The position numbers and the translations under genes were made by a program. The notes beneath the pieces were generated by a model, which was not told the origin of the DNA, did no database searches, and saw only the letters and a program-made list of their open reading frames with translations. This document shows positions 2,921-42,088 of a stretch of DNA of 64,000 bases, in pieces. Location of the stretch: sequence record OM339718.1; one strand, given 5' to 3'. The first letter of the stretch is position 1; the number at the start of each line of letters is the position of its first letter.

Positions 2921-3178
2921 ATGATTATTAGTCTGAATATGCATGAGTTTTATGAACTTTACCCGTGTTATCAAGAGTGGGTTTGTAATGAATCCCCTTC
3001 CCAATATTCTATCAATGCGGTTTATAATCGTATGATGCATAAGAAATCTCTAAACGTTATGGAAGCTAAGGAAGTTATGGCGTTTATTGCTTGGGTTGAA
3101 AACAACTCTTGCAAAGAAGATCTAGAAATCCTCAAATCAACTATCCAATATATGAAAGGTGTATTAAATGCTGCTTGA
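2921..3178 (+). CDS. Hypothetical protein
   Basis: 85-aa ORF with GAGG RBS. Confidence 0.75.
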   Translation: MIISLNMHEFYELYPCYQEWVCNESPSQYSINAVYNRMMHKKSLNVMEAKEVMAFIAWVENNSCKEDLEILKSTIQYMKGVLNAA

Positions 3179-3647
3179 ACAAATTAAGAAAGACCAAATT
3201 AAAGCCCGTAAATCAGAAGACCGTTCTACCCATCACGGGAAAGTTCGTATCAACGCTCTAACAACCCTAATTGGTGAAGCAAGTCCTTCCGGTAATCAGG
3301 TAGTAACTGACGAACAAGTCCAATCGGTTATTCGCAAATTCGTTAAAAACATTGACGAAGCAGTTACCGAGATCCGCAAAAGGGTTGTATCCGTATCAAA
3401 CGATATGACTAATCAAGAAGTGATGGATATTCTTAAAACTGATATCAAATTCACGGACTTGATGATCGAACGTGAACTGCTGAGTTCCTATCTTCCGAAG
3501 GTGTTTGGTGAAGAACATATCAAAGAGGTACTTAGTCAGCTCGTTGGTGGTTCTAACATCGGTCAAGTCATGGGCGCTTGTAAGAAAGCAGCTTCTGCCA
3601 AAGGTCTTTTGTTTGATGGTGCCCTTGTCAAAAAGGTACTGGGCTAG
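3168..3647 (+). CDS. YqeY/GatB C-terminal-like domain protein
   Basis: LLEQIKKDQIKARK, TDEQVQSVIRKFVK, ERELLSSYLP, IGQVMG and DGALVKK motifs typical of the YqeY family. Confidence 0.8.
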   Translation: MLLEQIKKDQIKARKSEDRSTHHGKVRINALTTLIGEASPSGNQVVTDEQVQSVIRKFVKNIDEAVTEIRKRVVSVSNDMTNQEVMDILKTDIKFTDLMIERELLSSYLPKVFGEEHIKEVLSQLVGGSNIGQVMGACKKAASAKGLLFDGALVKKVLG

Positions 3648-3657
3648 TATCATATGA

Positions 3658-3760
3658 AATCAAATTATAGATTTCCTATAAGTATTTATATAGAAGATCT
3701 ATAATTAGAACGAGTGAAACGAGTACGGCGTAGCCGGTTCGCTAAAGCTCACCAATCTTT
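3658..3760. repeat. Bipartite intergenic element, copy 1 (AT-rich palindrome plus GC-rich module)
   Basis: 3658-3710 matches 34475-34527 at 48/53 nt; the ACGGCGTAGCCG at 3725-3736 occurs inverted at 34549-34560. Confidence 0.85.
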
Positions 3761-3846
3761 CTAGAATCAATTCCTCGTTATCTCATACAATGTTTATTGT
3801 ATTCTCCATAGGAATTGATTCTAGACACCATACACGAGGTTTAATC

Positions 3847-4095
3847 ATGGTTTCTATAGAGAGTTTCGTAAACATTAAGAAAAGTGAAGGCTATAAGGAA
3901 GTAATACCGTTTGTGTCTGGTTATACAAGCCTTCAATTAAAGGTTAAAGACTGGGTATATTCCTTTCATGTGAATCACGATACCAAAGACGTCGAATATC
4001 GTGTTGTTACCCCATATGAAACCAAAGGGTTCATCATTTATAATTTGGATCATGTACTGGTTCGAGACGGAAAATTTTTTCGGGTGGGTGAATGA
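3847..4095 (+). CDS. Hypothetical protein
   Basis: MVSIESF start after GAGGT RBS. Confidence 0.7.
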   Translation: MVSIESFVNIKKSEGYKEVIPFVSGYTSLQLKVKDWVYSFHVNHDTKDVEYRVVTPYETKGFIIYNLDHVLVRDGKFFRVGE

Positions 4096-6114: not shown

Positions 6115-6543
6115 ATGACCATAGAGATAAATATTATAAAACAAGCAAAAGAAGAAACAAATGCAATGTTACCAATGATTATCCCATCTTGTATGGGAGC
6201 ATTGATAGCAAGTGTGCTTGTTGGTTGTGGGTATATACCCGATATTCCTACATATGTGTTTTTGTGTGCACTTTGTTATGCCCTCGTTGATCTTGGAATA
6301 ATGGTAGTAAACTGGATTAAACGACCAGATTATGGTAAAGAGTTTAAACATCCTCTATCTATGTGTATGCTTTATTCCTTCTGTGATAATAATGTTGGGG
6401 AATATCTCCATATTTATAAAAATACATCAAACTTTAATCTACGAATTACTCTTGCTGGAATCGTAATATTCGTTGGTGTTTTTGTATTTTATTCGGTAAT
6501 AGTTGGTGTCCCTGTAATGGTATCATCTTGGTTGTTCCTCTAA
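6115..6543 (+). CDS. Multi-pass membrane protein
   Basis: Several hydrophobic segments. Confidence 0.75.
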   Translation: MTIEINIIKQAKEETNAMLPMIIPSCMGALIASVLVGCGYIPDIPTYVFLCALCYALVDLGIMVVNWIKRPDYGKEFKHPLSMCMLYSFCDNNVGEYLHIYKNTSNFNLRITLAGIVIFVGVFVFYSVIVGVPVMVSSWLFL

Positions 6544-6570
6544 ATATAGTTTTGTAAAAAGGAAAATGAA

Positions 6571-7020
6571 ATGTCTATTGAAACTCGTGTAACAAAAGTA
6601 AAACAACGTATTCATGAAGAAACCCAACGGGTTAAATCGAATGCAATTGTTACTTGGGGCCTGTTCTTCATGGCAGCAGCCCTTGCATCAATCCCTGCAT
6701 CCACTATGTATGGCCCTATTATCATAGGTGCTATCGTGATGGTGATGTTCCAGTATCTGACCATGATCTCTTATGCTAAAGAACGGGTAGGTTATCTTGG
6801 TAAAGCGTATGCTAACCCAATGGCACTGATCTACATCGAGAGTGGTATTGATGGGGTTAAAGACCTCGAAGAGTCAATTCGGAAGTGGGAAGCAATGACC
6901 GACGATGAGCGAGAAGCCGCCAACAAACGAATCAATGTGATCACGGTTGTGGCTCTTTTGGCTCTCATTGCTGCCGTTTCTGGCTTCTTCTGTGGTCTTT
7001 TCTGGCTTCTTCCAGTATAA
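6571..7020 (+). CDS. Multi-pass membrane protein
   Basis: About three hydrophobic helices; AAGGA RBS. Confidence 0.8.
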   Translation: MSIETRVTKVKQRIHEETQRVKSNAIVTWGLFFMAAALASIPASTMYGPIIIGAIVMVMFQYLTMISYAKERVGYLGKAYANPMALIYIESGIDGVKDLEESIRKWEAMTDDEREAANKRINVITVVALLALIAAVSGFFCGLFWLLPV

Positions 7021-7063
7021 ACCACTTGCAAACATGTATTGGTTATGAGACTATAACCACATC

Positions 7064-7085
7064 AAGGGGGGTTCGCCCCCTCTTT
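7064..7085 (+). terminator. Intrinsic terminator with UUCG loop
   Basis: GGGGG(G)-TTCG-CCCCC followed by TCTTT. Confidence 0.65.
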
Positions 7086-7104
7086 CATAACATAAGGAAT
7101 AGAA

Positions 7105-7215
7105 ATGAATCCAGTAGCTAAACATAATTTCAACCGTCCTTCTGTTATGAAGGATAAGAAAGAGAATTCCAAGAAAATTCGTGGTAAAAAGCATAAGAAA
7201 TCGGAAGGTTGGTGA
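7105..7215 (+). CDS. Small basic protein (36 aa, absent from the ORF track)
   Basis: MNPVAKHNFNRPSVMKDKKENSKKIRGKKHKKSEGW with AAGGA RBS; NPVAKH...RGxxKHK resembles a common phage peptide. Confidence 0.7.
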   Translation: MNPVAKHNFNRPSVMKDKKENSKKIRGKKHKKSEGW

Positions 7216-7217
7216 TT

Positions 7218-7457
7218 ATGATTGATATGACATTATTTGGTGGTGGGGTAGTGTCTGGTCTTACAAAAGATGGAAAACCTACCCATATCAACCTTAAAGA
7301 CCATTCAATGGAAACGGTCAAACTGTCTATCCAAAAAGATGTGTTTGGGTATGAAGTAAGTATTATTATTTTTCCATGTGGTAGTACTGCAAGATTTATT
7401 GGTGATGTTCGAAATCGAACTGATGTGATCCTAAGAGATAAAGATTATAAAATATGA
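7218..7457 (+). CDS. Hypothetical protein
   Basis: ORF coupled to asiA. Confidence 0.7.
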   Translation: MIDMTLFGGGVVSGLTKDGKPTHINLKDHSMETVKLSIQKDVFGYEVSIIIFPCGSTARFIGDVRNRTDVILRDKDYKI

Positions 7458-7726
7458 AAATTACAAAAGTTGAATTGATGAAAGATATTGTAGCTACCGC
7501 ATCTATCTTGGCAAAGTATGGCTGTGATGATATTCTAGATACTCAATCTGGGTTTGTAGATTTTCTAAATGAACTGGGGTTTACTACCGTGCGAGGTAAA
7601 CCATTAACGATTTTTAATTTCAGAGTTATGGTTAGTAGTCTAACCCCATATCAGAAAAAAGAGATTATAAAAGAATTTGATGCTGGTAGAATTGACCATT
7701 TGATTAACTGTATGGTTGACGAATAA
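7454..7726 (+). CDS. asiA: Anti-sigma70 protein AsiA
   Basis: IVATASILAKYGCDDIL...FVDFLNELG aligns with T4 AsiA IITVASILIKFSREDIV...FIAFLNEIG; same 90-aa length. Confidence 0.9.
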   Translation: MKITKVELMKDIVATASILAKYGCDDILDTQSGFVDFLNELGFTTVRGKPLTIFNFRVMVSSLTPYQKKEIIKEFDAGRIDHLINCMVDE

Positions 7727-7753
7727 AAAAGGGATCCCGTGAGGATCCCTTTT
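7727..7753. terminator. Bidirectional intrinsic terminator
   Basis: AAAAGGGATCC-CGTGA-GGATCCCTTTT. Confidence 0.85.
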
Positions 7754-7812
7754 GTTTTATGTAAACTGATAATATATATCATCAGTTGCTCATTTATATT
7801 TAGGGTACTAAA

Positions 7813-12363: not shown

Positions 12364-12398
12364 AAAGGCTCCATCCTAAATAAGGTTGGAGCCTTTTT
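12364..12398 (+). terminator. Terminator hairpin carrying late promoter CTAAATA (12376-12382) in its apical part
   Basis: AAAGGCTCCA...TGGAGCCTTT stem with inner CCT/AGG pairs and AAATA loop, then a T-tract. Confidence 0.75.
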
Positions 12399-12415: not shown

Positions 12416-12793
12416 ATGGTAAGATACAAGGCAATTATATTTGGGATTCTTCTTATTTTGGCTGGTGGGTCTGTTTGGTATATGTTCAACAAGATCGAAT
12501 CACAGGCAATAACAATCGGAGAGATGACCCAACAACTAGAAACAATGACATCCAAATTATCCGCCATGGAATTGAGTATAAGCGATTTCAAACAACAGTC
12601 CAGCGAGTATAGTCAGACGGAAGAGAAATCGAATAGAGAGCTTTCTAAGCGCATTGGTACGCTGGAATCTAATGCTAGTCGCGGTAAGGATGCAATAGAC
12701 AAGAAACCTAAGCTAGTAGAGAAGATAATCCAGAATGATTATGAAGAGTTTGGAAGCAGAATGGATTGCCTTACTCTGGGGGAATGTAAATGA
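12416..12793 (+). CDS. pseT.3: Inner-membrane spanin (Rz-like, PseT.3)
   Basis: N-terminal TM helix then coiled coil, KPKLVEKII motif; directly upstream of a lipoprotein. Confidence 0.85.
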   Translation: MVRYKAIIFGILLILAGGSVWYMFNKIESQAITIGEMTQQLETMTSKLSAMELSISDFKQQSSEYSQTEEKSNRELSKRIGTLESNASRGKDAIDKKPKLVEKIIQNDYEEFGSRMDCLTLGECK

Positions 12794-13089
12794 AAAAAAT
12801 TCTAATTATGATGTGTATAGTGGTTCTTGCTGCATGTTCAACACCACCGAGACCAGACCCGGTATTAGTGTTTCATCCAAATAGACCAATCCCTGTAAAA
12901 ACTTATATTCCTAAATGGACTGTTATTAAGGAAGGTGAAACAACTTATGTCGGGATGACATATGAGGACAGTTTAAGGTATAGGGCTTGGCTTGAAAAAA
13001 TAGGTGTTTATATAGATTCACAAAATAGAATGTTATGTTCTTATAGAAAGGATCTGAAAGAACCACAATGTCAAAAAGTCCCCAAATAA
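12790..13089 (+). CDS. pseT.2: Outer-membrane lipoprotein spanin (Rz1-like, PseT.2)
   Basis: Signal peptide with lipobox LAAC followed by Pro-rich segment. Confidence 0.85.
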   Translation: MKKILIMMCIVVLAACSTPPRPDPVLVFHPNRPIPVKTYIPKWTVIKEGETTYVGMTYEDSLRYRAWLEKIGVYIDSQNRMLCSYRKDLKEPQCQKVPK

Positions 13090-17141: not shown

Positions 17142-17642
17142 ATGTTAGAAAAAATGCTTAAATTCGACGAGGGTTCGAAGCTTACTGTTTATTGGGATAC
17201 CGAAGGATATCCGACTATCGGTATTGGTCATTTAATAAAGAAACTTCGTACGAAAGATATGGGGGAAATTAACCGTGAGTTAAGTTCCCATGTTGGGAGG
17301 GTTATTACCGACGGTAAGATTACTCAATCAGAAGAAAGTCAACTTTTTGCTAAAGATCTTGAGGTAGTTAGAAATTCTATGAAAGGGTATGTCGATTTAT
17401 GGTCTACATATGTTGGATTAGATGAAGTCAGAAAAACCGCATTGGAAAATATGGTTTTTCAGATGGGGGCTAAAGGTGTAAATGGTTTCCCATCAATGCT
17501 TCGCGCTATGCGCTCCAAGAACTGGGTAGAAGCCAAGAAACATGGGCTTGCTAGTGCTTGGGCGAGACAAACGCCAAATCGCGCTAAGAGAGTTACAGAC
17601 GTTATTGAGACTGGTACTTACAAAGGTTATCCATTCGCATAA
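17142..17642 (+). CDS. e: Endolysin (T4 lysozyme family, GH24)
   Basis: E10-D19-T25 triad (DEG...WDTEGYPTIGIGH), ALENMVFQMG, WARQTPNRAKRV. Confidence 0.95.
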   Translation: MLEKMLKFDEGSKLTVYWDTEGYPTIGIGHLIKKLRTKDMGEINRELSSHVGRVITDGKITQSEESQLFAKDLEVVRNSMKGYVDLWSTYVGLDEVRKTALENMVFQMGAKGVNGFPSMLRAMRSKNWVEAKKHGLASAWARQTPNRAKRVTDVIETGTYKGYPFA

Positions 17643-17645
17643 AAC

Positions 17646-17675
17646 AAAAGGGATCCCATATCGGGATCCCTTTTT
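17646..17675. terminator. Bidirectional terminator between convergent e and tk
   Basis: AAAAGGGATCCC-ATATC-GGGATCCCTTTT. Confidence 0.9.
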
Positions 17676-18249
17676 ATTTTCCACTCATACCAGCAACCCA
17701 GTGTTTACGACAAACAGAAATATATCTATCGTTTCCACCAATACAAACCTGATCACCAATAACTTTTTTACCGTTCTCATCAACACGAAGGTTCATTGTT
17801 GCTTTAGAACCACACCAACAAATTGTTTTATGTTCCACAATTTGTTCAGCCATAACCACAAGTTGACGACTTGCATCAAACATCTCTCCATTGGAGTCAG
17901 ACATAAGACCATAACACATAACAGGAACATCGTAGTTATCAACAATAAAAGCCAGTTGCTTTACTTGTTCGACCGTCATAAATTGGGCTTCATCGATAAG
18001 AATACAATCTATTTTCTTTCCGATCTTATAACTCAAATAAAGATCAGTTAAATTCTCCTTATCAGAAAACATAATTGATGGACGAGAAACCCCCAATCGT
18101 GAAGAAACCATTTCCCCATCACGAGTATCAATGCAAGGTTTTAAAACTAAAACTCCCATTCCTCGTTCTTCATAATTATAAGCAACTTGCAATAAATGAG
18201 AACTCTTTCCCGCATTCATTGCGGAATGATGGAAATGCAAACTAGACAT
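17674..18249 (-). CDS. tk: Thymidine kinase
   Basis: SAMNAGKS, ILIDEAQF, VMCYGL, ICWCG and YISVCRKH motifs. Confidence 0.97.
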   Translation of the reverse strand: MSSLHFHHSAMNAGKSSHLLQVAYNYEERGMGVLVLKPCIDTRDGEMVSSRLGVSRPSIMFSDKENLTDLYLSYKIGKKIDCILIDEAQFMTVEQVKQLAFIVDNYDVPVMCYGLMSDSNGEMFDASRQLVVMAEQIVEHKTICWCGSKATMNLRVDENGKKVIGDQVCIGGNDRYISVCRKHWVAGMSGK

Positions 18250-18696: not shown

Positions 18697-18703
18697 TATT
18701 TAG
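18697..18703 (-). promoter_or_regulatory. Late promoter CTAAATA
   Basis: TATTTAG on + strand, about 20 nt upstream of the ParB-like gene. Confidence 0.65.
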
Positions 18704-25832: not shown

Positions 25833-25870
25833 AACATATTCCTCATGCGGATTTTATATTGATTACCAAT

Positions 25871-25918
25871 TTATATAAACATCATATCATAGTTAGAAAG
25901 GATGTTTAACTTTTATTT
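25871..25918 (-). promoter_or_regulatory. 48-bp repeated promoter cassette, copy 1
   Basis: TTAAAC-N17-TATGAT on the minus strand; 47/48 identical to 26985-27032. Confidence 0.75.
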
Positions 25919-26266
25919 GAAGTATTTTTCGAAGTAAGCGACTGGATGTCTGGCTTCTTCATCATACTCGTATTTAGGGGTATCAGAAAACAACACCCTA
26001 TAAGCAGTTTTCATCCCAGAACCATATGGTATCTCAATTTCATCGTTAAAGTCAAATGCTATATAACCTTTTTTACGAAGGGACCGACAGCTAACACTCA
26101 ACCAAGGTCCGCAACAGGATTTGAGTCTACCAATTGCGTAGATATCCTTTCCCTCATTGTTAATATAGCAATAAATCTTGTCTACATCAACACCATGGAG
26201 ATTTTTCCATTCTTCGCTGGTTTGTTTGAAGACCAAACTTGATTGAATCTCAGTAAGATCTTTCAT
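25913..26266 (-). CDS. Hypothetical protein
   Basis: MKDLTEIQ start overlaps the upstream TGA. Confidence 0.7.
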   Translation of the reverse strand: MKDLTEIQSSLVFKQTSEEWKNLHGVDVDKIYCYINNEGKDIYAIGRLKSCCGPWLSVSCRSLRKKGYIAFDFNDEIEIPYGSGMKTAYRVLFSDTPKYEYDEEARHPVAYFEKYFK

Positions 26267-26980: not shown

Positions 26981-26984
26981 TCAT

Positions 26985-27032
26985 TTATATAAACATCATA
27001 TCACAGTTAGAAAGGATGTTTAACTTTTATTT
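26985..27032 (-). promoter_or_regulatory. 48-bp repeated promoter cassette, copy 2
   Basis: Immediately upstream of tRNA-Leu(TAA). Confidence 0.75.
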
Positions 27033-27280
27033 TTACTTTCTTTTATACCAAGTCGATACGCTTCCACACAGTATGCATATATCCTCGATACTGGGACCAT
27101 AAAAGCTTTAGAAAGCCGAATCTTAATACGTTCGTTCTCTTTAGCCCGCTCATATAGTTTTCGAAATGGATCAGGGTCTATAGGCTGAACAGAACATATT
27201 TGGTTTGCTATATCTAGCGGGTATATTCTTCCACCCCAAGTTACTTTTTCTGATTCTAAAAAATTCATATCATTTCTCAC
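27020..27280 (-). CDS. Hypothetical protein
   Basis: 86-aa ORF. Confidence 0.65.
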   Translation of the reverse strand: MRNDMNFLESEKVTWGGRIYPLDIANQICSVQPIDPDPFRKLYERAKENERIKIRLSKAFMVPVSRIYAYCVEAYRLGIKESKNKS

Positions 27281-33437: not shown

Positions 33438-33614
33438 TTAGTCCTTTTCTCTCGCCTGTTCTTTAAGATCGTTTAGGTAGAGGTGAACATAAACACCAAA
33501 TTCAAAGGGGGTCATATCCTCAAGGTCCGAATGGCTCCATCCATCTTTTCTAAGCTTATATACCGTATTAAAATGATCGTATATGGTATGGTTAACAAGC
33601 GTTATGCGAAAAAA
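33438..33614 (-). CDS. 51: gp51-like C-terminal module, reachable from gp26 by a -1 frameshift
   Basis: FFRITLVNHTIYDHFNTVYKLRKDGWSHSDLEDMTPFEFGVYVHLYLND resembles the T4 gp51 C-terminus; no ATG/GTG/TTG before the late MTPF. Confidence 0.75.
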   Translation of the reverse strand, partial: FFRITLVNHTIYDHFNTVYKLRKDGWSHSDLEDMTPFEFGVYVHLYLNDLKEQAREKD

Positions 33615-34387
33615 CTTTCTACCCCTTTAAGTGTAACAATTTCTTGGTGTCCACATTTTTTACACTTTACAGGTATATTTAGAGTATGTTGGGGGAGGGA
33701 TGTTACAAATTTACCCATTTTGGTCAAAGCAACTGAATCGGCGTATTCCATAATTTCAGAAATATCCTCATACGGAATATCAACACCAACCTTAACAACC
33801 TGATCTCCCATATGAACTTCGTCAATACAGCGATTGATTAAGTTAAACAAGTCGGACTCAACTTCTACGTTGAAATATTCAACCTCGCTGATATTAGGAT
33901 ATCTCATATAAACTGTCATGTTCTCATTAAGAACAATTTTGTTATCTGGTGCATCCGACAATTTAGCGTTATTCAAGTTTACGTTTACTTTGATATCTGA
34001 GCCACAACGAATAATTTCACCATATTGGTCATATTGAACATTACCATCTTCATCAAGAATTTCGTTGGCGCAAGTAAACATAACCGGGACAGTAGGACTT
34101 GCTTTTGATAGCTTATACAAAGCTAGATAAACTGCTTCCAAGTCAAACACAGGTAAAAGGTCTACATCAACATTATCAGTTAGGATACAGTTTTTTACGA
34201 TTTGGATGATTGCATCATCGATTCCAGTATTGGCTTCGTTAGCTAACATCAACAGTTTCATTTCTTTCATCAAGAAAGCACGAACCTTGATCTTTCTACC
34301 ATCTGATAAAGTCACATTGGTCTGCTGTACGTTTTTCTGCATAGCAGCAAGAAGTACACTCTTGTCAATCGTGGTTTTGTTTGTCAT
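33602..34387 (-). CDS. 26: Baseplate hub assembly chaperone gp26 (gp26/gp51 family)
   Basis: VRAFLMKEMKLLMLA, LPVFDLEAVYL.L...SK, VYMRYP, CKKCG, ending LKGVESFF. Confidence 0.88.
   Translation of the reverse strand: MTNKTTIDKSVLLAAMQKNVQQTNVTLSDGRKIKVRAFLMKEMKLLMLANEANTGIDDAIIQIVKNCILTDNVDVDLLPVFDLEAVYLALYKLSKASPTVPVMFTCANEILDEDGNVQYDQYGEIIRCGSDIKVNVNLNNAKLSDAPDNKIVLNENMTVYMRYPNISEVEYFNVEVESDLFNLINRCIDEVHMGDQVVKVGVDIPYEDISEIMEYADSVALTKMGKFVTSLPQHTLNIPVKCKKCGHQEIVTLKGVESFFA
33608..33614 (-). promoter_or_regulatory. Predicted -1 ribosomal frameshift heptamer T-TTT-TTC
   Basis: X XXY YYZ in the zero frame just upstream of the gp26 stop; SD-like AAGGGG 7 nt upstream. Confidence 0.7.
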
Positions 34388-34415: not shown

Positions 34416-34422
34416 TATTTAG
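34416..34422 (-). promoter_or_regulatory. Late promoter CTAAATA
   Basis: 29 nt upstream of the gp26 start. Confidence 0.7.
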
Positions 34423-34474
34423 TACATTGTAACATGATGTTCTTCAAGACTTGATCTTAGATGGTTTCACTTGT

Positions 34475-34580
34475 AATCAAATTATAAAGTCTCTATAAGT
34501 ATTTATATAGAAAATCTATAATTAGAAAGTGTGAGCGAAGCGAACAGGCGGCTACGCCGTCTCACTACGTTCGAGATCTG
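34475..34580. repeat. Bipartite intergenic element, copy 2
   Basis: See 3658-3760; GC module inverted relative to copy 1. Confidence 0.85.
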
Positions 34581-34617
34581 TAGATATGAAAAAGCCACCC
34601 CGTAGGATGGCTTAGTA

Positions 34618-35559
34618 TTAACGAATGGCTTTCACAACGCCTGTAGTACGTCTTATGATACTCTCTATAGAGTCGATGGTGTTCTCTTCACCCTTAGTAG
34701 GAACATGCACTGTAGTTGATACAGCGAATGTGACGGTAAAGGTTGCTACCTGAGAATTGTTCTCAAAATCTAGTTGAACTTCACCTACCTCTATGGGAAA
34801 GCACCCTGTATTATGTACAGTGGATTGCTTAACTCCATGACGGTCTAACGTGATGACGTCAATATCCTTTGCATACGTATTATAAAATCCAAATTGTCCA
34901 TTTCTTGGGTTGACAATTGTATTCTGCCATGTTAGCATCAAAGAACGTTCCTCATAAGAAGGGGAACAGTAAAACGTCATACTCATGGTTCCGTAGTTTC
35001 TACCTCTTACTTCGTGTCGAGGTAGTTTGTCTGTACGGTTGATTGTCGTTTCCAAAGTAGAACTAGGAAGACCGACACTCTTTACCATTAATGCTAGATC
35101 TCTGTTTACATCGTAATCAGTCCCCAAAAATCCATCAAGGATCTCTCCTGCTCCCGGTATGATCCGGATCAAGGACGGGTCCCAAGCACCAAAAATCTTC
35201 TTCATGCTAGGCGTGAGGATTTTGTGTGCTTGTCCCAAAGCAATGTCCTGAACTCTATGCCAAGCATAACTTGTACCAGAGAAAAGACTATCATTGACGT
35301 CCATCCCGCTACTTGAATCAGGAAATATTGGTAAATCCCTATCAAAAACACCATCACTGAATATAGAGGTTCGGAAATCTCCGAACCTTACAATAAACAT
35401 GTTTGGTCTAGCCAGATCAGTATTTTCAACTTTCCGCATAAACCTAGTTAGGTCGGGGATCTCGCTTGCATCCCCACCATCGTTTAATAAATCTTCACCA
35501 AACCCGATAGTACTATCTATCATACTATCTATGGTTGGAATAGGTGGTATTAAGTTCAT
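34618..35559 (-). CDS. 54: Baseplate-tail tube junction protein gp54
   Basis: DLARPNMFIVRF, DRDLALMVKSVGLP, MSMTFYCSP, FPIEVGEVQLD; ATG overlaps the gp2 stop. Confidence 0.92.
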   Translation of the reverse strand: MNLIPPIPTIDSMIDSTIGFGEDLLNDGGDASEIPDLTRFMRKVENTDLARPNMFIVRFGDFRTSIFSDGVFDRDLPIFPDSSSGMDVNDSLFSGTSYAWHRVQDIALGQAHKILTPSMKKIFGAWDPSLIRIIPGAGEILDGFLGTDYDVNRDLALMVKSVGLPSSTLETTINRTDKLPRHEVRGRNYGTMSMTFYCSPSYEERSLMLTWQNTIVNPRNGQFGFYNTYAKDIDVITLDRHGVKQSTVHNTGCFPIEVGEVQLDFENNSQVATFTVTFAVSTTVHVPTKGEENTIDSIESIIRRTTGVVKAIR

Positions 35560-37093: not shown

Positions 37094-38152
37094 ATGAAAG
37101 TTAATATTCTCAATGGGGTTAACAGAGCTACTGGTGGTAGTTTCAACCCACTCACTGACACTAAGTCAGAGGGAACTGATCTTATTATAGAAAATAAAAA
37201 CTCTAAGAAACCCGGTATAAAGGCTTTGCAGTACCCATTAACCATGAAGGGTAGTGACAACAAACATTCTTCCTATTTAGTTTTCTATGCGGTGAAACCA
37301 ACAAATGGGGGGCTTAAAAATAGTGATATACACGAACGTTCTATGAGGTCTGTTAAGGGTAAATTCAACGAAGAAACCCTAGCCGTTATTCAGCTATATA
37401 TGCCAAACATGAACGAAAACATTAGTCATAATTATGAAGATAACGATGGTGGATTCCTTCAAGATATAGTTATGAACTACCAAGCCAACGCATCAGAAAG
37501 AGATGGAACATTGGATAGCATTGCAAACGGTGGTAAAGCCGTTGTAAACGCGATGGCTCAAAAGGTTATCGTCTCCACTGGTGGTATTGCACAGCGATAT
37601 AATTCTCAGGTAACTGGTAATTTGCTTGGTGATCGAGCCGCCCAAATGTATCGTGGTACTGGTGTACGTTCCCAAACATTTATATTTCAATTCCGACCGA
37701 GGTCTATGGCAGAATTAAAAGAGGTTGGACAAATAATTAAAACTTTTATGGTTCTTAGTGCTGCCGAAAACAAAGGGGCTGTAGATCTTGCTTCTCTTGG
37801 AATTGGTACGGATTCAGAACTTGGTGCGGGTGAAGGGTATACTTATCTCGAAGTACCCCCTTTGTGGTTTATAGAAGAAAGGGTAAGTCAAAGTCAAGAA
37901 CAGAAGATTAGATTTACACCTAAATTCGCAATGGGTCCAGCCGGTATTAGTAATATCCGGATCAACAAAACCCCAGACCAAATATATGATACATTCGCGT
38001 CAACGGCTGCGGATTCCGTCGCAATAGATCTAGAAATAACTGTTACAGAACTTCGTCCGGTTTATCGCGATTACTGGGAAGCTCTTACATCAGATTTGGG
38101 TAATCCTGATTCTGGTGAATTCTTCTTCGGTTCGTATGGAGGTAAGAGATAA
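37094..38152 (+). CDS. 48: Baseplate tail-tube cap gp48
   Basis: LQYP, IQLYMP, QMYRG...R.Q.F.F.F.PRS..E, FTPKF.MGPAGIS. Confidence 0.9.
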   Translation: MKVNILNGVNRATGGSFNPLTDTKSEGTDLIIENKNSKKPGIKALQYPLTMKGSDNKHSSYLVFYAVKPTNGGLKNSDIHERSMRSVKGKFNEETLAVIQLYMPNMNENISHNYEDNDGGFLQDIVMNYQANASERDGTLDSIANGGKAVVNAMAQKVIVSTGGIAQRYNSQVTGNLLGDRAAQMYRGTGVRSQTFIFQFRPRSMAELKEVGQIIKTFMVLSAAENKGAVDLASLGIGTDSELGAGEGYTYLEVPPLWFIEERVSQSQEQKIRFTPKFAMGPAGISNIRINKTPDQIYDTFASTAADSVAIDLEITVTELRPVYRDYWEALTSDLGNPDSGEFFFGSYGGKR

Positions 38153-39943: not shown

Positions 39944-41778
39944 AATTTGAATTCTTTTTTGGCGTTGTAGAGGATCGTTTTGATCCTCTTAATCAAGGGA
40001 GATATAGAGTTCGTGTGATGGGATACCACACTGATCAAAAATCAAAAGATGATTTGATTGGTATACCTACCGATGAGCTTCTTTGGATGCGTTGTGCCAC
40101 GTCAACGGATTCAGCCTCTATATCTGGTGTAGGAAATAGCCCAACAAACCTAGTAGAGGGTGTGTGGGTGATGGGGGTTTTCAAGGATGAGTTTAAACAG
40201 GATGGTTTAATACTTTTTTCTATCCCCGGATCTTATGTCCAAAAACCAAATACTCTACGGGGATTCTGTGACCCAACAGGTCAATACCCTCGTTATATTG
40301 GTAACGACGTTAATATATTAGCCGGTGGTGGGCAAAAGGGTAATGGGATCCATGGAACGGCACCAGTTTCTATTGATGGGAAGCCGCTATCGGTTTATAC
40401 TCAGGATGAAAATACTTCTGGTGCATTAGCCCCTGATGACAAATCATTTGACGATGCAATTGCAGATGATGATCCAGATTTCACAATTGAAAAAATGTTG
40501 AAGGGAGACGAAGGGGTTAGGAACAAATGGTATCTCGATTCTCTTGGATATCCAACCATAGGTATTGGTCATCTAATCATACATGAGAATACACGAAACG
40601 TAGCCCGTATAGATGCGATTCTAACCCAACAGTTGGGTCATCCTGTACAAGGGGGTGTGATCTCCCCAGAAGACGTTACAAAGCTGTTTAACGAGGATAT
40701 CCAAAAGACTCGTGCTGATATGATGAGATTCGAAAATATACGTCGTGTCTACGTCAAAGAAAATAGAAGTCGTCAAATGGCTTTAGAAAATATGGCGTTT
40801 CAGATGGGGGCTGGCGGATTAGCGAAATTCAAAAATACACTAAACGCTATGTATGAAGAACGTTGGCGAGATGCATATAATGGTATGCTCGACTCTCTTT
40901 GGGCTAGACAAACTCCGGGTCGAGCGAATCGGGTTGCCAAGATTATTTTAACCGGAAACCTAGAGTCTTATGGAGTAAAACCAAAACCAGAGGAACAGCC
41001 TATTATCCCAATATCTGGGAGAATGAAGCGTTCTATTATGGCATTGTCCTCTCCTGTTGTTTTTGCTGACGAAGTAGACCCAGATGATCCGTCCGTTCCA
41101 CCACCACCTCGTACTGATGGTCTTCTTTTCGAAGAACCACCCAGCGCATATGCTGCTGAATACCCATATAACCATGTATATGAATCGGAGAGTGGTCATA
41201 TTCAGGAATTTGATGATACTCCGGGGAAAGAACGATATAACCTGAAACATACATCAGGGACGTATATTGAGATTTCTGGTGGTGGTCGTCAAGTAAACAA
41301 AGTTATGGGTGATGACTATGTTATCGATATGGCAAACCGGATGATCAACGTAAAGGGTGATTATCAGGTAGTTGTTGAAGGTAACGCGACTGTATACGTT
41401 ATGGGTAACTGTACCCAGCAAGTTGATGGAAACTTGACTCAGGTTGTCAAAGGAAACGTATCTGAATCGGTTTATGGTAACGTTGAACAGTCGGTGAAGG
41501 GGAACGTTAAGCAAACTGTTAACGGTGGCTTAGAATCGCGTATAGACGCTGATGTGACCCTATCTGTCGGTGGTAGTGTTGTTAGTGATATAGAAGGGAA
41601 TTTAACTGCAACAGTTCAAGGTAATTGCAACGAGAACGTAGAGGGTGATATGAACCTTAATGTTTTTGGTGATTATACAGTTACTGTATCTGGTGACTAT
41701 AAATCGCAAGCTGCTCAATCTCTTATTACCTCTCAGGGTACGACCGAGATTAGTGGTTCTACTGTTAGTATTAACTAA
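39940..41778 (+). CDS. 5: Tail-associated lysozyme/cell-puncturing needle gp5
   Basis: OB-fold (GVVEDRFDPL.QGRYRVRV.G), lysozyme domain (DEG...DSLGYPTIGIGH), YPYNHVYESESGH, VxG octapeptide beta-helix repeats. Confidence 0.97.
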   Translation: MKFEFFFGVVEDRFDPLNQGRYRVRVMGYHTDQKSKDDLIGIPTDELLWMRCATSTDSASISGVGNSPTNLVEGVWVMGVFKDEFKQDGLILFSIPGSYVQKPNTLRGFCDPTGQYPRYIGNDVNILAGGGQKGNGIHGTAPVSIDGKPLSVYTQDENTSGALAPDDKSFDDAIADDDPDFTIEKMLKGDEGVRNKWYLDSLGYPTIGIGHLIIHENTRNVARIDAILTQQLGHPVQGGVISPEDVTKLFNEDIQKTRADMMRFENIRRVYVKENRSRQMALENMAFQMGAGGLAKFKNTLNAMYEERWRDAYNGMLDSLWARQTPGRANRVAKIILTGNLESYGVKPKPEEQPIIPISGRMKRSIMALSSPVVFADEVDPDDPSVPPPPRTDGLLFEEPPSAYAAEYPYNHVYESESGHIQEFDDTPGKERYNLKHTSGTYIEISGGGRQVNKVMGDDYVIDMANRMINVKGDYQVVVEGNATVYVMGNCTQQVDGNLTQVVKGNVSESVYGNVEQSVKGNVKQTVNGGLESRIDADVTLSVGGSVVSDIEGNLTATVQGNCNENVEGDMNLNVFGDYTVTVSGDYKSQAAQSLITSQGTTEISGSTVSIN

Positions 41779-41780
41779 CG

Positions 41781-41809
41781 AAAAGGGATCCCAAATCGGG
41801 ATCCCTTTT
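41781..41809. terminator. Bidirectional terminator
   Basis: AAAAGGGATCCC-AAATC-GGGATCCCTTTT. Confidence 0.9.
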
Positions 41810-41812
41810 GTT

Positions 41813-42088
41813 TTAGATGTCGTCTGCACTTTGTTTGATATATTCTTGGAGTGCTTCTTTTTCAAGTCCCCACACAAATGATAGAGTGCCGCCACCTACA
41901 TCAATTTCAAATGGACAGAAATCCCAATAAATGGTTTCTTTCATCTTTACTTCCATTAGAAGTTCTTCATCTTCCACTTTATCAAAGTTCTTTTCGATAA
42001 AGTTTTTTAGTTCTCGACGAACTCGAAAATTATGAACCTGATTTTCTTTAAAACCAGCAAAATTAGTTCCTACATAAATTAGTTTCAT
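41813..42088 (-). CDS. Hypothetical protein
   Basis: 91-aa ORF with AAGGA RBS. Confidence 0.75.
   Translation of the reverse strand: MKLIYVGTNFAGFKENQVHNFRVRRELKNFIEKNFDKVEDEELLMEVKMKETIYWDFCPFEIDVGGGTLSFVWGLEKEALQEYIKQSADDI

Follow-up and report, generated by a model that had tools for sequence, protein, structure and literature searches.

The origins of replication of phage T4, of which there are at least five in 169 kb, have a minimal unit of about 100 bp that consists of a promoter and an AT-rich unwinding element, and they share no sequence motif (PMC3016281). The lack of a shared motif has made these origins hard to define. PeSLs, another class of sites known from T4-like genomes, are short, conserved and repeated intergenic dyads that combine a strong sigma-70-type promoter with an effective terminator; a genome has tens of them, clustered in hyperplastic regions and running in the same direction as the genes (PMC2839356, PMC4122927). 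Here, we describe a composite intergenic element of a T4-like Aeromonas phage that has traits of both. Like T4 oriF/ori(uvsY) and oriG/ori(34) (PMC3016281), it spans about 100 bp and has an AT-rich unwinding stretch beside promoter-like hexamers, and like the T4 origins it occupies a handful of sites round the genome, some of them at strand-switch or late-gene borders. The element family is not described in the literature that we searched.

The stretch of DNA analysed here (64,000 nucleotides, hereafter the window) is identical (100%) to the last 64 kb of Aeromonas phage P19 (OM339718.1, record positions 164237-228236), a T4-like member of the Straboviridae (Emmerichvirinae, Ceceduovirus) with a genome of 228 kb. 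A sequence-only reading of the window had reported an AT-rich imperfect palindrome joined to a GC-rich module, present twice in unrelated contexts, and this anatomy was borne out. The AT blocks of the first copy (c5, 3647-3711, plus strand) and the second copy (c6, 34464-34528, plus strand) align directly with 85% identity over 71 nt, and their 53-bp cores (3658-3710 and 34475-34527) agree at 48 of 53 positions, as that reading had stated. Folded as single-stranded DNA, the imperfect inverted repeat it had noticed gives an imperfect stem of about 18-20 base pairs, with z = -2.2 to -2.8 relative to shuffled sequences. A heptamer (3658-3664) and a -10-like hexamer (3700-3705) of the c5 AT block occupy invariant or near-invariant columns of the family; in c6, the -10-like hexamer lies at 34517-34522. 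The GC module of c5 (3708-3752), whose standard order reads on the minus strand and which contains a 4-bp GC mini-hairpin, is a diverged reverse complement of that of c6 (34531-34573, plus strand), again as claimed. A 12-mer from this module occurs once per strand in the window, where 0.03 matches would be expected by chance, so the repeat is not a chance one.

The surroundings of the two copies do indeed differ. While c5 lies in the early region, flanked by a YqeY-like gene (3168-3647) and a small ORF (3847-4095) and upstream of ndd-like and gp52-like genes, c6 separates a gp54-like gene (34618-35559, minus strand) from a gp26-like baseplate hub gene (33602-34387, minus strand). Outside the repeat, the gp54-like gene is followed by an intrinsic terminator (34592-34613, minus strand), and a CTAAATA box of late-promoter type stands upstream of the gp26-like gene (34416-34422, minus strand). 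Downstream of c5 there is an extra long hairpin (3760-3825) whose arms, of 16 nt each, span 3760-3775 and 3810-3825. Upstream of another copy, c4 (L004 27610-27695), lies a second hairpin with a similar motif in its arms, and both recur in the related phage ZPAH1. The motif common to the arms of these long hairpins is short and looks like the invariant AT-block heptamer. The window holds further repeats. Two stretches 23.3 kb apart (17205-17471 and 40546-40812) are 84-88% alike and probably represent the lysozyme domains in genes for an endolysin-like protein and a baseplate hub (gp5-like) protein. In the tRNA region, near minus-strand tRNA genes, 61 nt are directly repeated with 90% identity (25869-25929 and 26983-27043), and near-identical GC-rich terminator hairpins, with a GGGATCCC-type stem and A and T runs on their flanks, are reused at several gene ends (7743-7772, 17640-17680 and 41781-41815).

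Present twice in the window, the element has exactly six copies in the whole 228-kb genome according to BLAST and profile searches, for which the P19 record was divided into five pieces that were scanned separately, the profile search using an nhmmer profile of the AT block. In record coordinates, the AT blocks lie at 12743-12807 (c1, minus), 37282-37346 (c2, plus), 78259-78323 (c3, minus), 125696-125760 (c4, plus), 167883-167947 (c5, plus) and 198700-198764 (c6, plus). Directly after it, c1, c2, c3 and c6 carry an identical 43-nt GC module, and the module of c4 is a variant with a strand-for-strand swap in its central 4-bp hairpin stem; c5 is the only P19 copy with an inverted and diverged module. 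The sequence-only reading was thus right that one module is inverted, but it named the wrong copy: since c1, c2 and c3 share the module of the second copy, it is the first that deviates. Every copy is intergenic and sits at a boundary of transcription units, three of the six in late-gene or border regions and three within hyperplastic early regions. Read from AT block to GC module, c1, c4 and c5 follow the direction of transcription, c3 and c6 oppose it, and c2 lies between a tail-fibre gene and a convergent gene for a SegE-like GIY-YIG endonuclease. Gaps between sites measure 24.5-47.4 kb. Six random points on a circle reached such a minimum gap in 0.56% of trials (P = 0.006) and so small a gap spread in 0.11% (P = 0.001). 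This even spacing could instead be a survivorship effect, because DNA between close direct repeats is prone to deletion; between distant ones, such a deletion would kill the phage.

The six sites are conserved across two genera; a BLAST search of relatives had been proposed by the sequence-only reading. In phage 65 (Ishigurovirus), comparison of the flanks assigns each of six sites to the position of one P19 copy, ZPAH1 (Ishigurovirus) has six that are syntenic with those of P19, and CC2 has at least five; by BLAST, every Ceceduovirus and Ishigurovirus record holds the element in three to seven places. Neighbouring sites are 23.6-51.3 kb apart in ZPAH1 and some 24-52 kb apart in phage 65. On the scale of two genera, a mobile element of MITE-like or homing-target type was rejected, with all six sites syntenic in P19, phage 65 and ZPAH1, and a shared flanking duplication was not seen. 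At the distance of phage Aeh1, some sites differ from those of P19. A scan of 185,579 bacterial genomes (one per species) with degenerate IUPAC patterns derived from copies of the element gave no true copy, exact-pattern searches of IMG/VR, JGI metagenomes and bacterial genomes returned only these Aeromonas phages and two phage 65-like contigs, and pattern and BLAST searches of other phages found none with the element. We conclude that P19 carries six fixed cis-acting sites that are neither a chance repeat nor a mobile insertion.

Within a genome, copies are about 90% identical to each other. Between P19 and phage 65, syntenic pairs are no closer than non-syntenic ones (78.5% vs 78.3%), and six columns carry fixed differences between the P19 and the phage 65 sequence types, with no copy excepted. 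These comparisons indicate concerted evolution of the copies, driven either by gene conversion or by a shared reader with which they co-evolve, a pattern that fits sites read by one factor. At c5, the element of CC2 is 95.9% identical to that of P19, compared with 77-83% for the coding DNA of the left flank. The orientation of the GC module varies. At c5 it is inverted in P19, CC2 and ZPAH1 and standard in phage 65, whereas at c1 it is standard in P19, CC2 and phage 65 and, in ZPAH1, the exact reverse complement of that phage's own standard module.

The element as a whole comprises an AT stretch of about 65 bp, which ranks among the most readily melted DNA of the genome, and a GC-rich module of about 42 bp. 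Three copies reach the genome maximum of A+T in 50-bp windows (43/50), and of 22 regions with at least 42/50, five are copies of the element; an AT-rich unwinding element of about 50 bp, as in T4-type origins, is therefore present. Over 26 copies from five phages, 30 of the 65 AT-block columns are invariant. Five columns of the -10-like hexamer, out of six, are identical in all 26, the -35-like hexamer is variable among copies, and the outer motifs of the block are kept in sequence, beyond mere pairing. ZPAH1 c2 has the left-arm motif complete on both sides of the palindrome. In phage 65, c6 consists of two complete AT blocks inverted around a 73-nt segment with two GC mini-hairpins, which makes a palindrome some 200 nt long (-44.6 kcal/mol, z = -9.8; L113 5362-5559, gp54|gp26 spacer); inverted AT-block pairs of this sort would be a simple route to flipping of the GC segment by recombination. 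The idea that the element forms the strongest cruciform in the genome was dropped, as a genome-wide scan of 120-nt windows for hairpin energy did not single out the copies (ranks 0.2-16%). When arms were swapped between copies, phage 65-type arms paired better than chimeras (-7.2 vs -5.2 kcal/mol), and P19-type native arms (-4.4 kcal/mol) had no pairing advantage. Because this result is mixed, it argues only weakly for selection on the dyad symmetry of the AT block. Pairing in the GC mini-hairpin is retained in 90.7% of cells, with two pairs changed on both sides, in a formal count for which MAFFT partly misaligned the pentamers of the module; read by eye, the sequences include at least five distinct stems, all GC-only, that preserve it. 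In the flanking pentamers the sequence is conserved without covariation, and a pseudoknot was discarded as an unsupported model of the module, the two complementary pentamer pairs crossing each other and varying on one side only.

A wider family emerges from more distant Aeromonas T4-like phages. The gp54|gp26 spacer holds two tandem copies of a related composite element in Aeh1 (Cinqassovirus) and one in phiAS5 (Chrysonvirus), in each case an AT-rich imperfect palindrome with GC mini-hairpin modules on both sides. With an Aeh1 copy as query, BLAST located 8-11 places in each of Aeh1, Ah1, avDM12-TAAL, phiAS5 and phiWae14 and at least two in PX29. The last 13 nt of the c6 GC module, which in P19 are confined to copies of the element, recur exactly in the elements of Aeh1 and Ah1, as does a 15-mer of the module in ZPAH1. 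The P19-type and Aeh1-type groups differ in module order. Some Aeh1 sites match those of P19 (gp54|gp26 and near ndd/gp52) and others do not, e.g. one upstream of a gp15-like gene. Most Aeh1 copies are co-oriented with genes, T-runs follow the palindrome, and several copies lie directly upstream of a late-promoter box.

What the sites might do is best approached from their distribution. Their small number, even spread and stable positions even in plastic regions, their independence of gene orientation, with one copy between convergent genes, and their extreme A+T content and invariant sequence with concerted change all speak for a function at the DNA level, and we infer that the sites act on DNA and not through a downstream gene. 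We tentatively favour, at clearly less than even chances, a cis-acting site of replication-origin type, in which an unwinding element is coupled to a structured module; the sequence-only reading had already put forward an unwinding element with a second module as a possible origin. The sites would then be replication origins or initiation zones of the T4 type, whose origins they resemble in count and spacing. The AT block would serve as the unwinding element, which a transcript started at its internal promoter-like hexamers might open, the GC module would bound the melted region or offer a hairpin on the displaced strand, and the invariant motifs would be read by a putative factor common to the six sites. 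The position of c2 between convergent genes, where there is nothing to express, is in line with such a role. A bolder version, in which one conserved composite sequence marks all origins in large Aeromonas T4-like phages and is read by a dedicated putative factor, we consider doubtful. If it were true, the modules of these sites would flip and shuffle by recombination between inverted copies.

Other indications do not point to origins. Neither GC nor AT skew, a check proposed by the sequence-only reading, shifts at c3-c5. Skew in T4-like phages follows transcription, which makes this null result weak evidence. Closeness of the sites to orthologues of T4 origin genes was discarded as a criterion, being judged no better than chance. 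T4-type origins have a MotA-dependent middle promoter upstream of the unwinding element, and none was recognised here: Mot-box spacing was not seen, and the ORFs that were checked for a MotA domain, those between the gp52-like gene and asiA (6115-7457), have none. A consensus scan found no canonical sigma-70 promoter inside either AT block. An AsiA homologue is encoded at 7454-7726 of the window. Aeh1 is likewise reported to have AsiA and no MotA (PMC1524935). The layout of the Aeh1 elements, with its co-orientation and late boxes, leans towards a role in transcription and against an origin.

Such a role could take the form of transcription punctuation, i.e. a cassette that pauses, terminates or insulates transcription at a boundary and/or a non-canonical promoter with the GC module as structured leader at the start of its transcript, in a PeSL-like manner. 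The boundary positions of all copies suit this proposal, as do canonical terminators within about 30 nt of c1, c2 and c6, the end of the c4 GC module 5-20 nt before the RBS and start codon of the next gene in P19, ZPAH1 and phage 65, the near-invariant -10-like hexamer, and the co-orientation, T-runs and adjoining late boxes in Aeh1. With AsiA present and MotA not found in the ORFs checked, a middle-mode promoter class of a new kind is conceivable. Yet we regard punctuation as unlikely, as there are just six copies for hundreds of transcription units, three of the six face no gene or are placed between convergent ones, P19-type hairpins are followed by no U-run, terminators would not need 30 invariant columns, and ordinary early promoters of P19 look different (TTGAC-type -35, extended -10, often a terminator hairpin). 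A more specific idea came from the T4 late-promoter octamer that the sequence-only reading had placed on the minus strand of both AT blocks, and which is found there (3683-3690 and 34500-34507). The octamer occurs in all six P19 copies and faces the downstream gene at c3 and c6, but it is antisense or aimless at the other four and absent from the phage 65 and avDM6 versions; the late genes of the window, the gp26-like gene among them, are preceded by a different box. A working late promoter of the T4 type is thus scarcely credible here, and the octamer, which has 20 copies in P19 including the six inside elements, is incidental. CTAAATA appears to be the late-promoter box of P19 in place of the octamer. 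In the window it is found on the plus strand at 12376, 13106, 37062, 42516, 50268, 55701, 60566 and 62346 and on the minus strand at 18703, 20448, 22001, 29786, 34422 and 37052, usually preceded by C and 20-45 nt upstream of co-oriented start codons, most of them of structural or late genes; the same box is reported for Aeh1 (PMC1524935). An action of the element as RNA, with AU-rich and GC hairpins as an RNase III-type processing site, stability element or small RNA, would draw on the 18-20-bp fold of the AT block, which is alike in either orientation of the palindrome, and on the compensatory changes in the mini-hairpin. We deem it very improbable given that c2 lies behind a terminator and between convergent genes, that the outer motifs are conserved in sequence and not just in pairing, and that native P19-type arms gained nothing in the arm-swap. 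The small RNA suggested by the sequence-only reading fared no better: the copies share no terminator, the strand of the module is not fixed relative to the AT block, and both window copies gave chance-level matches alone in Rfam 15 (E > 0.5, far below gathering scores).

Two further explanations accept a function or fate at the DNA level without replication. The sites may form a binding array for a putative phage or host protein that acts genome-wide in some other way, e.g. in DNA organisation, topology or packaging. Their number, spacing, invariant motifs, concerted change and independence of orientation are all compatible with this, none of them being specific to replication. A possible likeness of the invariant heptamer to the core of a site for a host DNA-bending protein was set aside. 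We find a binding array distinctly unlikely: packaging of the T4 type is not known to use specific sites, and no candidate protein was identified, the sole DNA-binding candidate among ten flanking proteins searched against Pfam being the SegE-like GIY-YIG endonuclease beside c2. The gene for this endonuclease directly adjoins c2 (L002 37578-38480, minus strand); flank similarity shows its region at the same position in phage 65, and ZPAH1 has an unannotated gene of similar size there, a positional conservation that is unusual for a free-standing homing endonuclease. The copies might also be recombination substrates or selfish repeats, maintained by gene conversion and serving, by role or by accident, as junctions for large-scale module exchange with no dedicated biochemical function. 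Their concerted evolution and the shuffling and inversion of modules between copies and lineages agree with this, as do two public records. In AS-sw, the left flank of c1 is joined to the right flank of c4 with a crossover inside the AT block (L155 2480-2620), and in AP1 collinearity breaks inside c6 (L156 2500-2530), where DNA homologous to P19 83.4-85.0 kb meets the c6 GC module. Both junctions may, however, be assembly artefacts, and AS-sw is labelled a partial genome in which the left flank of c4 is missing altogether. Positions are moreover stable across two genera, the element is more conserved than flanking coding DNA (the c5 comparison with CC2), and repeats carry a cost of deletion and inversion that argues for selection, so that an explanation by recombination alone seems improbable. 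Either way, long and near-identical copies coincide with collinearity breaks in some public records and hence matter for the assembly and comparison of these phage genomes. Several of these Aeromonas phages are studied for aquaculture therapy.

Compared with known systems, the origin-type site that we tentatively favour stands apart in several ways. It shares with PeSLs a short, conserved and repeated intergenic dyad, and both may be recombination junctions between genome modules. Identity with PeSLs was nevertheless rejected: a strong sigma-70-type early promoter is lacking, the element contains no terminator-like site (the one at 34592-34613 being a separate hairpin), and it has six dispersed copies, of which three are co-oriented with genes, two opposed and one between convergent genes, together with a separate GC module. 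A check for PeSL-type junctions gave the breaks at c4 (AS-sw) and c6 (AP1), possible artefacts as noted, and collinearity in most relatives. Ordinary PeSL-like early cassettes also exist in P19 (L004 1553-1625, 5549-5623 and 30928-31002; window 7727-7812), with a terminator hairpin overlapping or preceding a TTGAC-type -35 and an extended -10, and are distinct from the element. The RNase III hairpins of T7 resemble it as a set of about ten or fewer conserved intergenic hairpins per genome. In T7 the sites share a single transcribed strand and RNA structure defines them, whereas the strand of the element varies and one copy lies outside any obvious transcript. REP/BIME sequences are likewise intergenic mosaics of imperfect palindromic units, GC-rich and in either orientation beside short motifs, that evolve in concert, but they are bacterial, have hundreds of copies and are tied to RAYT transposases, while the element is restricted to phages and low in copy number, and an AT-rich palindrome makes up most of it. 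T4 origins, finally, have no common sequence and use MotA middle promoters, in contrast to the one conserved sequence seen here, for which MotA was not found in the ORFs checked. A set of origins defined by a motif would thus be unlike the model system and, if real, would constitute a sequence-defined origin system that T4 itself lacks, with six conserved, alignable and evenly spaced candidates that make origin choice, or another genome-wide process, testable by descriptive mapping.
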